From the sequence record LT960552.1: a stretch of DNA of 64,000 bases. One strand, written 5' to 3'. The notes beneath the pieces were generated by a model. The model was not told where the DNA came from and did not search any database. It saw only the letters and a program-made list of their open reading frames with translations. Position numbers and translations under genes: made by a program. Shown one piece after another: positions 3,174 to 63,906 of this stretch (its first letter is position 1; the number at the start of each line of letters is the position of its first letter).

Positions 3174-3204
3174 AAGGTCACCATTATGGTGGCCTTATTC
3201 TTTT
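3174..3204 (+). terminator. Intrinsic terminator
   Basis: AAGGTCACCA/TGGTGGCCTT stem followed by ATTCTTTT. Confidence 0.7.
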
Positions 3205-3232
3205 GGAACAGGCCATAATTTTATGGTATAAT
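3204..3232 (+). promoter_or_regulatory. Early/middle-type promoter (TGGAAC-N17-TATAAT)
   Basis: TGGAAC 3204-3209; TGG-TATAAT 3227-3232. Confidence 0.75.
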
Positions 3233-22851: not shown

Positions 22852-22880
22852 TGGAACAAACAAAAAAAATCTGCTATAAT
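22852..22880 (+). promoter_or_regulatory. Early/middle-type promoter (TGGAAC-N17-TATAAT)
   Basis: TGGAAC 22852-22857; TGC-TATAAT 22875-22880. Confidence 0.75.
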
Positions 22881-45948: not shown

Positions 45949-45977
45949 TGGAACGTTTTAGAAAATTGTGGTATAAT
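45949..45977 (+). promoter_or_regulatory. Early/middle-type promoter (TGGAAC-N17-TATAAT)
   Basis: TGGAAC 45949-45954; TGG-TATAAT 45972-45977. Confidence 0.75.
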
Positions 45978-50065: not shown

Positions 50066-50093
50066 AAAAAGGAGCCATTAGGCTCCTTTTTTT
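50066..50093. terminator. Bidirectional intrinsic terminator
   Basis: AAAAAGGAGCC-ATTA-GGCTCCTTTTT. Confidence 0.85.
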
Positions 50094-50572
50094 ATTTGTG
50101 TCATGTCTAAATCACCAGATTTGATCAGTTTTCTTGCTTGATTCGCTCTCTTGGCTGTGTTAGACTCTGGTACTACATTAAATGATTCTAAAATAGAACA
50201 TTGTTGAGCAGAGGGCAATGATTTGAACTTTCTAACATCAACAGTTAATGCAGTATGGTGTATAACTTGTTCATCTTCTGGTATATTATTATTTTTTTCT
50301 AAGTAATCAGCCAATTTTCTTAATACTTCATGAATAGGCTTGTCGGTTAAATGCCCCAAACAGCGTTTAAATGAGTTTACAACTCGACCTTCCCACCCGT
50401 TAACTTCATTTTGTAATACTTCACGGCAATGCTGATTGTCGGCATGAAGATGGTCTAAAACAGGTTTTGTTATAGGAATACCAATAATAGGATCTATACC
50501 TTTTTGTTTTTTTAACAATTCGTTGCGATATACTGCTGCTTCTTTTGAATTTTTTAATCTTTGTCGTTTCAT
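50078..50572 (-). CDS. Endonuclease VII-like Holliday junction resolvase (T4 gp49-like)
   Basis: Q.G.DPI...VLDHLH...CREVL...N..EG aligns by eye with T4 EndoVII (LDHDH...VRGLLC..CN..EG). RBS GAGG before ATG 50572. Confidence 0.75.
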   Translation of the reverse strand: MKRQRLKNSKEAAVYRNELLKKQKGIDPIIGIPITKPVLDHLHADNQHCREVLQNEVNGWEGRVVNSFKRCLGHLTDKPIHEVLRKLADYLEKNNNIPEDEQVIHHTALTVDVRKFKSLPSAQQCSILESFNVVPESNTAKRANQARKLIKSGDLDMTQIKKGA

Positions 50573-50614: not shown

Positions 50615-50643
50615 TGGAACAGATAAAAATAATTTGGTATAAT
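50615..50643 (+). promoter_or_regulatory. Early/middle-type promoter firing into a gene-free region
   Basis: TGGAAC 50615-50620; TGG-TATAAT 50638-50643. Confidence 0.75.
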
Positions 50644-50649
50644 AAGATA

Positions 50650-51149
50650 GTAAAACCCTGTTTGGCAATACATATATGTATTGACAGTTAATAATCCTGA
50701 TCTAGTCGAAAAGTAGACAGCAGATGAGAAGTTCAAACAGTTCGTTGTGCAAAAGAAACCCGTTAGAAGTACGTGCAGTCAATCAAATGAGACATAAGAC
50801 ACCGAGATCACGGCAATGCGGCACATTAAAGAAGTACACTAGGCAAATAGTACTTCCTCGATAGACATATAAGGATCGCACCTTACAAAGTAGCTAAGGG
50901 AGTTTTTCTGAATAAGAAAATTGCGATTGATTTATATACAATATAGATCCGTCAAAAATTCAGAAGAATAAGTATTAAGATTGATTGTATAGTCTTAATA
51001 TTAGTGTGGTAAGCCCACGACCGTTACTATATGAACAGTGATAGAGAGAAACAGAGTAACCCGCTTTCGTTCTAGTTATAGAAATTCACTATACAATTAA
51101 TCGATGACCATCATCGTCAGAAAATTAATACCTTAACTGGTATTTTTTT
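50650..51149 (+). ncRNA. Candidate ~500-nt structured non-coding RNA of unknown family
   Basis: Promoter upstream, terminator at 51127-51149, no ORF of 60 aa or more, and at least eight stems, several with G-U pairs on the + strand. Confidence 0.55.
51127..51149 (+). terminator. Intrinsic terminator-like hairpin
   Basis: AATACC-TTAACT-GGTATT followed by a T run. Confidence 0.6.
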
Positions 51150-51320
51150 ACGCATTCATTCCCCTGCGGGGGGATGGTATAATCTCAACAAATCTCGTCA
51201 GTATTATAGTATTGAACATAGAAAGAAATGAATTGAGTTGTTTCAGTACAAACGAAGTGAAGTACAGAACAACGAAAATTCTTTGACATTCGAAGAATGG
51301 CAAATTAAAACAATAGAAAC

Positions 51321-51356
51321 AAAAAAACCAGCAACATGTGCTGGTTATGATTTTTT
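51321..51356. terminator. Bidirectional terminator-like hairpin
   Basis: AACCAGCA-ACATG-TGCTGGTT with an A run on the left and a T run on the right. Confidence 0.7.
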
Positions 51357-51524
51357 GTTTTCACGTTTGATCTTTTTATTATATTGCTTCACCATCAAAT
51401 CTTTGTCATTGACTGGCATATTCAATAGCATTTCATATGAAGTATTAGGTATATGAACTGCTACTTCCATTAAAGAGTTTTTAATTTCTTCACAATTGAA
51501 CCGCAAATCAGATATTTCCTTCAT
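51345..51524 (-). CDS. Small gp51-like / tail-assembly-chaperone extension ORF (59 aa; absent from the ORF track)
   Basis: Translated by hand: MKEISDLRFNCEEIKNSLMEVAVHIPNTSYEMLLNMPVNDKDLMVKQYNKKIKRENKKS. ATG overlaps the upstream TAA (TAATG), and the frame is open back to the slippery site. Confidence 0.7.
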   Translation of the reverse strand: MKEISDLRFNCEEIKNSLMEVAVHIPNTSYEMLLNMPVNDKDLMVKQYNKKIKRENKKS

Positions 51525-52399
51525 TACTTCGTCTGGTTCTGAGATGAGAAGCTTGATACGAAAAAACTGCTTGGATCAAATTGAAGATTTTCTAATTTCC
51601 ATTCATGTCCACATTTAGAACATCCCACATCCATTTCATGAGTTACCCCAACATTATTAATATAATCAGATTTTTCACGAATTTGTTTTAAAATAAATGC
51701 TGGTTGTTTTCCTAACCAATCGTTAATAAATTCTCTTTCAGTAACTACAATTTGGTCTACAGTTTCAATAGATTCAATATTTGCAACTATCATATCAAAA
51801 CTTAATTGAGTCATACTTTCAAATACTGAAGTAAACTGTTTAATTTTATCATCATCAGATAAATCAGCTCCTTCCAATAATTGAGCTTTCTTTTGCTCTT
51901 GAAACATTTTAAGCCCAAACTCTGAATGTTCTTTCCATGTATGAGGCTTAAATTTCAACATTAATCCACCAACATCTTCAAGTACTAACGTAGGTTGTTC
52001 TTCTATAAGTTCAGCACTATCAATTAAGTACTGCAAATTCCTTTCAAATGCCCCATGATGATCACATTCTGGACAATTTACTTCTATTTGATATTCTGTT
52101 TCTTTTGTGGCTAGTTTAATTCCTATTAAAAGTAATTCAACATCAGGAACAAACAATTCACGAGCATTTGCTATATTTGGTACACAATTCTGAATAACAT
52201 TAACTACTGCTTCACCATTCATAAGTGCATCAGGATTGTTAAACATCAATTCATCTCGTGCCGACCGTGCACAAATACCACATTCTACTGTATTATTAAC
52301 TAACACACCAGCAGGGTATTTTATTACATCATTACTTACTAATTTTGTATATAAAGTTTCTACTTTAGTATACTTTGATAAAGGGTTCATTTGATTCAT
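51524..52399 (-). CDS. Baseplate hub assembly / tail assembly chaperone (T4 gp26-like)
   Basis: NPLSKY, ARDELMFNNPDALMNGEAV..VIQNC, DVELLLIGIKLAT, CPEC and CSKC zinc pairs, FDPSSFF near the end. Confidence 0.75.
   Translation of the reverse strand: MNQMNPLSKYTKVETLYTKLVSNDVIKYPAGVLVNNTVECGICARSARDELMFNNPDALMNGEAVVNVIQNCVPNIANARELFVPDVELLLIGIKLATKETEYQIEVNCPECDHHGAFERNLQYLIDSAELIEEQPTLVLEDVGGLMLKFKPHTWKEHSEFGLKMFQEQKKAQLLEGADLSDDDKIKQFTSVFESMTQLSFDMIVANIESIETVDQIVVTEREFINDWLGKQPAFILKQIREKSDYINNVGVTHEMDVGCSKCGHEWKLENLQFDPSSFFVSSFSSQNQTK
51560..51566 (-). other. Putative -1 ribosomal frameshift heptamer T TTT TTC
   Basis: In-frame AGT TTT TTC; the -1 frame (TTT TTT CGT ATC...) runs without a stop into ORF 51345-51524. 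Confidence 0.6.
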
Positions 52400-56362: not shown

Positions 56363-56366
56363 GGTT

Positions 56367-56374
56367 CATAAATA
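56367..56374 (+). promoter_or_regulatory. T4-type late promoter (CATAAATA)
   Basis: NATAAATA box after the portal gene. Confidence 0.5.
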
Positions 56375-56417
56375 ATGTTGATTCGTTCAATGAACGATTG
56401 AATAATAAGGATAGGTT

Positions 56418-56651
56418 ATGTTAGATGAAATTTTTGAAGCTAAAGATGACTCTATGTACGACCCTGAAGATGATCAGACAGTATATAAGTTGACTGACAC
56501 TCGGAAACCTAAATTGACATTACAAATTCTCAATAACTTAAGAAAGTATAGAGAATTTAAAAAGAATGAGGCTGCTAAGCGTGATGCAATTGTTGCTATA
56601 GTATATGCACAATCTTCTGGTGATGATCAAGCTGGTGGTGGAATGATGTAA
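56418..56651 (+). CDS. Small head-module protein (putative prohead core)
   Basis: 77 aa between portal and core genes; AGGA RBS; DTRKPKLTL motif. Confidence 0.65.
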   Translation: MLDEIFEAKDDSMYDPEDDQTVYKLTDTRKPKLTLQILNNLRKYREFKKNEAAKRDAIVAIVYAQSSGDDQAGGGMM

Positions 56652-56759
56652 TTATTAATGAAAAGTACTGTTTTTAAGCTTTTTTGAAAATGGTATTTTT
56701 ATTAATAATAAATAATGACATACCAAAATAAAATTTTGTATATCTGTTTGGAGGATATA

Positions 56760-60805: not shown

Positions 60806-60834
60806 TGGAACGTTTTATATAATTATGGTATAAT
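60806..60834 (+). promoter_or_regulatory. Early/middle-type promoter (TGGAAC-N17-TATAAT)
   Basis: TGGAAC 60806-60811; TGG-TATAAT 60829-60834. Confidence 0.75.
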
Positions 60835-63877: not shown

Positions 63878-63906
63878 TGGAACAGGAAAAAATGTTCTGG
63901 TATAAT
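63878..63906 (+). promoter_or_regulatory. Early/middle-type promoter (TGGAAC-N17-TATAAT)
   Basis: TGGAAC 63878-63883; TGG-TATAAT 63901-63906. Confidence 0.75.

Follow-up and report, generated by a model that had tools for sequence, protein, structure and literature searches.

A large structured RNA family of RaK2-like jumbo phages and enterobacterial mobile islands

What is encoded in a stretch of phage DNA that offers hardly any room for proteins? This question is raised by a window of 64 kb (the whole stretch of DNA analysed here), which matches Yersinia phage fHe-Yen9-03 at 100% identity. This phage (LT960552.1, Eneladusvirus) belongs to the RaK2-like jumbo myoviruses. When all six frames are considered, the longest part of the window without an open reading frame (ORF) of at least 60 amino acids covers positions 50669-51237, or 569 nt, whereas the runner-up has only 151 nt; thus, an earlier note made from the letters alone (hereafter, the sequence-only reading) was correct in calling this the only long gene-free stretch. 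The same reading proposed that the gap holds a phage-encoded large multi-helix structured RNA with its own promoter, and strong covariation among homologues now supports this proposal. We consider it almost certain that the gap contains a genuine gene for a structured non-coding RNA (ncRNA). The RNA represents a new large structured family that is found in RaK2-like jumbo phages and in enterobacterial mobile islands and that has no counterpart in Rfam 15.

Comparative evidence for a plus-strand RNA fold

The gap is conserved, in syntenic position and at 68-100% nucleotide identity, in 62 phage records from several genera (blastn). These records correspond to Eneladusvirus, Mimasvirus, Asteriusvirus, the group of Munch, 7t3, and fENko-Kae01, Kaldavass, and Hallingskeid, and in most of them, the homologous gap is either unannotated or overlaid by tiny "hypothetical" ORFs. 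Extra homologues were obtained through pattern scans of IMG/VR, metagenomes, and GTDB genomes. An alignment of 28 distinct sequences was analysed with RNAalifold, and helices were also sought by scanning pairs of columns for covariation, after which an explicit structure of 24 helices and three pseudoknots was scored on 43 distinct homologues (alignment A5).

The folding of the single sequence gives only a modest signal, with z = -2.64 for the plus strand and -1.95 for the minus strand. Among the 28 sequences, RNAalifold predicted 78 pairs, 45 of which show compensatory double changes. On the 43 sequences, 89.7% of the cells of the 24-helix fold are paired, versus 38-43% when the partners are slid by 1-3 columns, and both sides have changed in 76 of the 118 pairs. 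The covariation score is 0.368, compared with about 0.06 for slid partners and 0.138 for shuffled alignments, and none of 500 shuffles reached the observed values. In addition, around 100 columns are invariant across the 43 divergent members, many of them unpaired. At the level of sequence comparison, it is this evidence, rather than the folding of a single sequence, that is decisive for a structured RNA.

The alignment also identifies the strand. G-U pairs are abundant (for instance, GU:43 at alignment columns 520/541 and AU:22/GU:20 at 437/454), and since these would be C-A mismatches on the minus strand, the functional strand is the plus strand. G-U wobbles that fit the plus strand only had also been noted by the sequence-only reading, in three stems. 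Of the stems that it had picked out by eye, six are supported by covariation: the palindrome at 50666-83, GAAGTAC/GTACTTC, GTTACT/AGTAAC, TTCTA/TAGAA, the outer part of TTTTCTGAAT/ATTCAGAAGA, and TATTAAGATT/AGTCTTAATA. Two others need a different partner or register. CCTTA does not pair with the TAAGG at 50895, as had been proposed, but with the upstream TAAGG at 50870-74, and instead of CGATGA/TCATCG at 51102, covariation supports GATGA/TCGTC (51103-07 with 51114-18). The remaining stem, the nested GATTTATA/TATAGATC, lies within an optional domain that is absent from many homologues.

Two further pairings were considered for the fold. The helix UCUA/UAGA (50701-04 with 50714-17) was dropped, as it is just 46% paired. 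A long-range pairing of GCUAAGGG with CCGUUGC, predicted by RNAalifold, is mostly invariant, contains a C-A mismatch in the window copy, and competes with a better-supported helix (P14 in Table 1); it could possibly represent a tertiary or alternative contact.

No known family was recognised by the sequence-only reading, and systematic scans lead to the same result. The whole window gave no matches to Rfam 15 (4227 models) at the gathering thresholds, in a set that includes ROOL, GOLLD, OLE, HEARO, raiA, RNase P, transfer-messenger RNA (tmRNA), and 6S, as well as group I/II introns, small ribozymes, and riboswitches. With E values of up to 10 allowed, the 1.1-kb region matched only unrelated models, with low scores and at chance level (E above 1), and scanning nine homologous loci gave nothing recurrent. 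ARAGORN found no transfer RNA (tRNA) or tmRNA in the 64-kb window, and a search of the literature gave no description of this RNA.

Copies in jumbo phages and in chromosomal islands

The sequence-only reading pictured a single gene belonging to a phage, and both parts of this picture have to be revised: the RNA forms a family with one to three copies per phage genome, and full-length copies are also located in chromosomal islands of enterobacteria. Within the window, blastn, a 21-nt pattern (3 mismatches allowed), and a covariance model of the core (R1; 51003-51122, 123 positions), which scores the window copy at 122 bits, found no other copy and returned only 51002-51121. A second, diverged copy with the same type of promoter is found 85 kb away in fHe-Yen9-03, outside the window (LT960552.1, 258992-259714). 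We refer to the copy between the endonuclease VII and baseplate hub genes as copy A and to this second one as copy B. Copy B is located directly upstream of small hypothetical genes, as is also the case in BF, CBB, GAP32, XbC2, and Kaldavass. In the tree, the A and B clades separate across genera, so the duplication is old. In Serratia phage BF, copy B carries an A-type variable insert (AGTTGGCATAGTTTGTACCACC), in contrast to the other B copies, which suggests, from the sequences compared, recombination or gene conversion between paralogues.

Asteriusvirus phages (121Q, PBECO4, phAPEC6, WPEC5, and the E. coli K-12 phage Sharanji) carry three copies. One lies at the endonuclease VII-hub site, another is near a Dam methyltransferase gene, and another is B-like. 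In the third Asteriusvirus copy, a strong hairpin with U7 (GGTGACA...TGTCGCC TTTTTTT) immediately follows the promoter, ahead of the conserved core. In RaK2, the syntenic gap has just 364 nt, and R1 finds no RNA there. The RaK2-related Klebsiella phage K64-1 has at least one copy, elsewhere in its genome, which is divergent and scores 85 bits with R1; the gene immediately upstream of this copy, on the same strand, is annotated as coding for an RNA polymerase sigma factor.

Outside phages, the chromosome of Citrobacter amalonaticus P55 contains a full-length homologue in an integrative island of about 9.5 kb between ppdD and nadC. This island encodes, in order, a large serine integrase, the RNA, ORF165, a cI-type S24 repressor, a Ner-like regulator, two small envelope or secreted proteins, ORF291, a resolvase, and GmrSD. 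In variants of the ppdD-type island found in metagenomes, a retron-type reverse transcriptase replaces GmrSD, and in one variant this enzyme is accompanied by a 299-amino acid protein. GmrSD and the retron-type enzyme are defence genes. A second type of island is located at the ffs-ybaA hotspot of E. coli, where a full copy occupies a 1.4-kb unannotated gap. This full copy is present in 2 of 5426 complete genomes, and nine further complete genomes, including E. coli O68:H12 97.3, contain only a decayed 3′ remnant in another ybaA-ffs island. The remnant consists of the terminator-like hairpin, a degenerate GC hairpin, and a degenerate CGUCAG block. In the island copies, the RNA unit is retained from the promoter through the whole core and the terminator-like hairpin to the block that follows, while the domain at 51230-51305 is absent. 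No match was found in the plasmids searched.

We also compared the neighbours of the RNA across its contexts, that is, at phage loci A and B, at the third locus of Asteriusvirus, and in the two types of island tested. An all-against-all blastp of the neighbouring ORFs gave no protein common to all of them.

Anatomy, promoter, and 3′ end

As far as the alignments show, the RNA is compact and built of several domains. It contains three pseudoknots or more, leaves many invariant nucleotides unpaired, and has peripheral modules that can be swapped. Its features are collected in Table 1.

Table 1. Features of the RNA gene and its surroundings, in window coordinates
Feature	Position	Strand	Details	Basis
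Endonuclease VII (gp49-like), left flank	50078-50571	-		ORF list, annotations of the record and of relatives
Promoter	50615-50643	+	-35-like TGGAAC 50615-50620; extended -10 TGGTATAAT 50635-50643
All seven promoter-motif sites	314-342, 3204-3232, 22852-22880, 45949-45977, 50615-50643, 60806-60834, 63878-63906	+
Core structured RNA	50650-51149	+	predicted start to first hairpin and U7, about 500 nt	43-sequence alignment
5′ pseudoknot	50658-50743	+	P1 50658-64 with 50734-40, crossing hairpin P5 (50728-30 with 50741-43)
P2, enclosed by P1	50666-71 with 50678-83	+
P3, enclosed by P1	50697-99 with 50721-23	+
Junction domain	50746-50885	+	P6 50746-50 with 50821-25; P7 50760-63 with 50810-13, around a variable insert
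P8, junction-domain hairpin	50831-37 with 50850-56	+
P9, junction-domain hairpin	50870-74 with 50881-85	+
Optional peripheral domain	50903-50968	+	closed by P10, 50903-05 with 50966-68; 3/3 pairs covarying
Conserved 3′ core	50973-51097	+	hairpin P11 50973-82 with 50991-51000; most conserved part
P12 pseudoknot	50984-89 with 51092-97	+	P11 loop with downstream strand; 98.8% paired, 4/6 covarying
P13 hairpin	51006-09 with 51015-18	+
H-type pseudoknot of the 3′ core		+	P14 51023-27 with 51056-60, crossing P15 51037-41 with 51086-90 and P16 51044-48 with 51064-68
P17 hairpin	51070-74 with 51079-83	+
P18 hairpin	51103-07 with 51114-18	+	GAUGA/UCGUC; carries first CGUCAG motif
P19 terminator-like hairpin	51128-32 with 51139-43	+	AUACC/GGUAU, then U7 ending at 51149
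Post-terminator conserved block	51155-51207	+	GC-rich hairpin CCCC UGC GGGG, extendable to about 10 bp (51155-64 with 51169-78)
Linear part of the block		+	GGAUG after the GC hairpin, then second CGUCAG motif (CAAAUCUCGUCAG)
Downstream structured domain	51230-51305	+	P21 51230-34 with 51277-81; inner hairpin; hairpin 51283-51303
Bidirectional terminator-like hairpin	51326-51355	.	AACCAGCA...TGCTGGTT, T runs on both strands	terminator scan, both strands
Small ORF g245c, right flank	51345-51524	-		ORF list, annotations
Baseplate hub (gp26-like), right flank	51524-52399	-		ORF list, annotations, tblastn of the hub protein

The 5′ pseudoknot is of the H type, with the 5′ end pairing with the loop of the downstream hairpin P5. 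On both sides, changes are observed in six of the seven pairs of P1 and in all six of P2, which is the palindrome noticed in the sequence-only reading and forms a hairpin that is variable among homologues, while P5 is 100% paired and two of its three pairs covary. In the junction domain, P6 is 100% paired (3/5 pairs covarying), P7 is 99.4% paired, and all seven pairs of P8 covary; the invariant single-stranded blocks of this domain are GAUGAG, ACCCGU, CACGGCAAU, GAUAGA, and UAAGGGA. The optional domain is present or absent clade-wise (alignments A2 and A5), and its module, a hairpin plus AGAUCCGUC.AAAAUU, may be found in other members after 51074 or at both sites. For instance, the island copies hold the AGAUCCGUC module at both sites. 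In the 3′ core, a second H-type knot is built around GAUAGAGAGAAACAGAGYAACCCGCUUUCG, and its helices P14, P15, and P16 are each 100% paired, with two, three, and one covarying pairs, respectively.

With respect to transcription, the sequence-only reading had described a full promoter pointing into the gap, a description with which the homologues agree. TATAAT (50638-50643) is unchanged in all 28 homologues of the alignment, and the promoter motif is retained in the chromosomal island copies. The spacer between TGGAAC and TATAAT has 17 nt, the last three of which are the TGG of the extended -10. A generic sigma-70 scan missed this promoter because TGGAAC matches the -35 consensus at just three of six positions; in other respects, it has the features of a sigma-70 promoter, with a perfect TGGTATAAT and a -35 element at the 17-nt distance. 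The complete motif, TGGAAC-N14-TGGTATAAT (29 nt), is found at seven sites of the window, all of them on the plus strand, whereas 0.31 occurrences would be expected, which indicates that this is one of the phage's own recurrent early-type extended -10 promoters. Judging from the sequence, the motif probably defines a phage early promoter class, and transcription is predicted to start near 50650.

The 3′ end is less simple than was first proposed. The hairpin and T run said to close the RNA about 500 nt downstream are indeed present as P19 and U7, but the conserved unit runs on to around 51305. P19 has an energy of -5.5 kcal/mol with only two G-C pairs, too few for the terminator scan, which passed over it. 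Nevertheless, all five of its pairs change on both sides across homologues, and the corresponding hairpins of homologues have energies of -7.9 to -9.0 kcal/mol (two folded whole). In the third Asteriusvirus copy, the P19 hairpin is absent, and the U run is retained. The block at 51155-51207 is near-invariant in 43/43 members, including the island copies and the copy without P19. Further downstream, the domain at 51230-51305 is common to the A and B copies of jumbo phages (alignment A3); within its last hairpin, UUG-A-CAUUC-GAA-GAAUG-G-CAA, seven of eight pairs covary. A different long hairpin takes the place of this domain in the island copies. Finally, the bidirectional hairpin at 51326-51355 is conserved in A-copy loci, where it ends the converging g245c/hub operon, and it is likely the end of any read-through RNA. 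Given the conservation beyond 51149, the true 3′ end could be at 51149, at the GC hairpin, or around 51355. The RNA gene probably reaches past 51149, to approximately 51305 or 51355, which would correspond to an RNA of roughly 500-700 nt.

The two CGUCAR motifs (51103-51120 and 51195-51201) are about 80 nt apart, and their sixth base is G in both or A in both in all 41 sequences that have the two motifs. In K64-1, both motifs read CUUCAAG. A pairing of GAUGA with UCGUC for the second CGUCAG, similar to that of P18, was rejected, as it shows no covariation and is broken in 121Q and K64-1. Such concerted change of identical, non-complementary motifs suggests that both may contact one shared partner.

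As for the surroundings, the G+C content of the RNA is 0.36-0.44, compared with approximately 0.32 in the neighbouring DNA. In LT960552.1, the gene at 51524-52399 on the minus strand is named "Lead, cadmium, zinc and mercury transporting ATPase"; this name is a misannotation, judging from relatives and from tblastn, which give a gp26-like baseplate hub. The second-longest stretch of the window without an ORF of at least 80 amino acids is 56363-56714 (352 nt).

Possible roles and known systems

Our best explanation, which we hold with moderate confidence, is that this new large structured ncRNA acts in trans as an early folded particle in a conflict. A host-type early extended -10 promoter would transcribe the plus-strand RNA, which would then act early in infection as a self-sufficient folded particle, for example, as a ribonucleoprotein (RNP) scaffold or decoy, an oligomeric assembly, or a ribozyme. 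Trans, early, and self-sufficient action is inferred from the lack of a neighbouring protein common to all contexts, combined with a sigma-70 type promoter that is also present in the islands. The role would lie in phage-host or element-element conflict, serving takeover or counter-defence in the phage and exclusion or self-protection in the islands. The RNA is shared by lytic jumbo phages, where as many as three old paralogues coexist, and by islands with GmrSD or retron cargo, which hints at a player in such conflicts that does not depend on a particular protein. A more specific proposal, namely that the particle is aimed at a host factor, is one that we put forward only tentatively. In this case, the partner would be a factor conserved in enterobacteria, not one specific to phages, and the two CGUCAR motifs would be candidate contact points for it.

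Several observations speak against this explanation or against parts of it. Trans action and a host partner are deduced solely from the missing shared neighbour gene and from the distribution of the RNA, and the ends, abundance, and timing of the RNA are predictions for every member. The B and island copies are closely followed by a gene on the same strand, an arrangement that would also suit a role in cis. Strong conservation 3′ of P19 is difficult to fit with a simple RNA that ends at 51149. Moreover, the concerted change of the CGUCAR motifs corresponds to just two or three evolutionary events.

A bolder possibility, which we consider less likely than not, is that of a new class of RNA machine, either a ribozyme or a self-assembling particle, whose diverged paralogues cooperate in cells infected by jumbo phages, which has been exchanged between lytic jumbo phages and bacterial defence islands, and which acts on one conserved host partner through its two CGUCAR motifs. 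If this were true, the conflict between phage and host would include a weapon, or a counter-weapon, made of RNA alone.

Catalysis taken by itself agrees with the observations but seems unlikely to us. According to this proposal, the invariant junction nucleotides and the pseudoknotted core would constitute an active site for self-processing or for the processing of host or phage RNA such as tRNA. The roughly 100 invariant columns, many of them unpaired, the pseudoknots, and the swappable domains are what is seen in RNase P RNA and in group I/II introns. With RNase P RNA, in particular, the new RNA has in common its modularity, its large size, long-range pseudoknots, and conserved junctions, and the phages possess their own tRNA genes elsewhere. 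Short words such as CCACGACC... and AGAGAG.AAAC presumably resemble conserved regions of RNase P RNA, although we take this resemblance as a lead only. In contrast, no Rfam model of RNase P, introns, or small ribozymes matches at E values up to 10, the order of the RNase P-like words does not fit the P4 helix, and the conserved blocks do not reproduce the P4 pseudoknot. The island copies lack a tRNA context, there is no sign of processing sites, and among large structured RNAs, many have no catalytic activity.

A cis-acting leader or attenuator is, in our opinion, improbable as well. In such a system, the structure of about 480 nt would sense a signal, RNA polymerase would either stop at P19 and U7 or read on, and the GC hairpin plus linear block would form a nut-like site for anti-termination or processing that serves the downstream genes. 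The terminator-like hairpin is located inside the conserved unit and not at its end, and a same-strand gene begins 20-250 nt past the unit in the B and island copies, as one would expect from a leader. A structured 5′ RNA with a terminator-like hairpin followed by a GC hairpin and a linear element is also the arrangement of riboswitches or leaders and of the anti-termination RNAs of lambda, HK022, and rrn, and we take the GC-rich hairpin and the conserved linear element to recall the rrn and lambda nut sites. The proposal is weakened by copy A, which has no downstream gene on the same strand to regulate and faces a converging operon and a bidirectional terminator, yet is conserved like copy B. 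It is also weakened by the covariation scan, in which no alternative pairing covaries with the variable arms of the terminator, so that no antiterminator was found. Furthermore, the downstream genes are wholly different between contexts, the third Asteriusvirus copy has no P19 hairpin, known aptamers are much smaller than a structure of about 480 nt, and no Rfam match was obtained.

An element that acts at the level of DNA or as a primer is very improbable. It could be an origin with an R-loop primer transcript, like ColE1 RNA II or T4 oriF/oriG, or some other cis site, and the islands would have copied it in order to exploit the phage machinery. The likeness to these transcripts lies in a structured RNA that is driven by a promoter, has about 500 nt, and contains a G-rich tract, and in its dispersed copies: each genome has one to three copies with a strong promoter, a C4/G6 tract is conserved after the U run, and mobile islands carry the same RNA unit. 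Nevertheless, the compensatory changes, the pseudoknots, and the G-U pairs on one strand point to selection for an RNA fold of about 500 nt, which is far beyond the needs of a primer. No iterons, tandem repeats, or AT-rich unwinding block were found, and the GC skew turns at around 44-46 kb, with gene orientation and not at the element, which does not hold the skew minimum either. The islands, for their part, lack the replication or packaging genes that would mark a satellite.

Finally, the notion that the gap is coding, whether as a decayed or atypical gene for a protein or as several small ORFs, can practically be dismissed, even though Kaldavass, Hallingskeid, WPEC5, fENko-Kae01, and others have three to five annotated "hypothetical protein" ORFs of 30-70 amino acids each inside the RNA gene, since the longest stop-free stretch shifts in strand, frame, and position among homologues without any conserved ORF, variability does not follow codon phase (0.228, 0.192, and 0.225), and indels are not multiples of three. 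These annotated ORFs, whose frame and strand are not conserved, are probably spurious, and thus the many records that call them across the RNA gene require correction.

Among transcribed phage RNAs, a candidate for comparison comes from the distant relative PA5oct, for which ncRNA004, a "putative lncRNA" (long non-coding RNA) of 619 nt, was annotated from RNA sequencing and accounts for a low 0.02-0.08% of phage reads (PMC7318152). Like the RNA of the window, ncRNA004 is found in a gap poor in ORFs, on the plus strand between genes on the minus strand, and is preceded by a sigma-70-like promoter; it ends with a C/G-rich hairpin of about 10 bp that resembles the block at 51155-51178. Part of ncRNA004 matches the gap between the resolvase and baseplate hub genes of the related Pseudomonas phage Paride, which is the position of copy A. 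In Paride, this gap between the Holliday-junction resolvase and the hub is ORF-poor and has around 2.2 kb. Homology of ncRNA004 or the Paride gap to the window RNA could not be demonstrated, as nhmmer gave E = 0.053 over 47 nt only and R1 gave nothing. PA5oct offers circumstantial evidence that this position is transcribed in the wider group.

Large, intricately folded RNAs are rare in bacteria and phages. To our knowledge, nearly every class of this kind has proved to be a ribozyme, the core of an RNP, or, in recent work, a cage that assembles by itself, with several classes still lacking a function. By analogy, the invariant unpaired nucleotides, pseudoknots, and swappable modules of the new RNA may be regarded as hallmarks of ribozymes, RNP cores, and self-assembling ornate RNAs. 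Unlike most earlier classes, this one is found in phages that infect E. coli K-12, Salmonella, Klebsiella, Yersinia, Erwinia, and Serratia; in chromosomes, it is found in islands of E. coli and Citrobacter. Such an RNA is unexpected in such well-studied hosts, and it is immediately testable there, since genetics, pull-downs, and structural work are straightforward in these organisms.

The closest analogues of this RNA are ROOL and GOLLD, to which the sequence-only reading had already compared it in size. Both exceed 500 nt, combine helices and pseudoknots with conserved unpaired nucleotides, possess a promoter of their own without any protein gene as a constant neighbour, and are found in phages or prophages and in chromosomes, often adjoining tRNAs. 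In contrast to them, the new RNA matches neither the ROOL nor the GOLLD model of Rfam and has no tRNA gene in the 64-kb window, its hosts are Enterobacteriaceae and lytic jumbo phages, and a genome may contain two or three diverged paralogues. The agreement is one of size class, complexity, and phage association, not of homology. As an ornate large RNA of this kind, the new RNA exceeds 500 nt and has 24 helices and three pseudoknots supported by covariation, and it is carried by phages and mobile islands under a promoter of its own.

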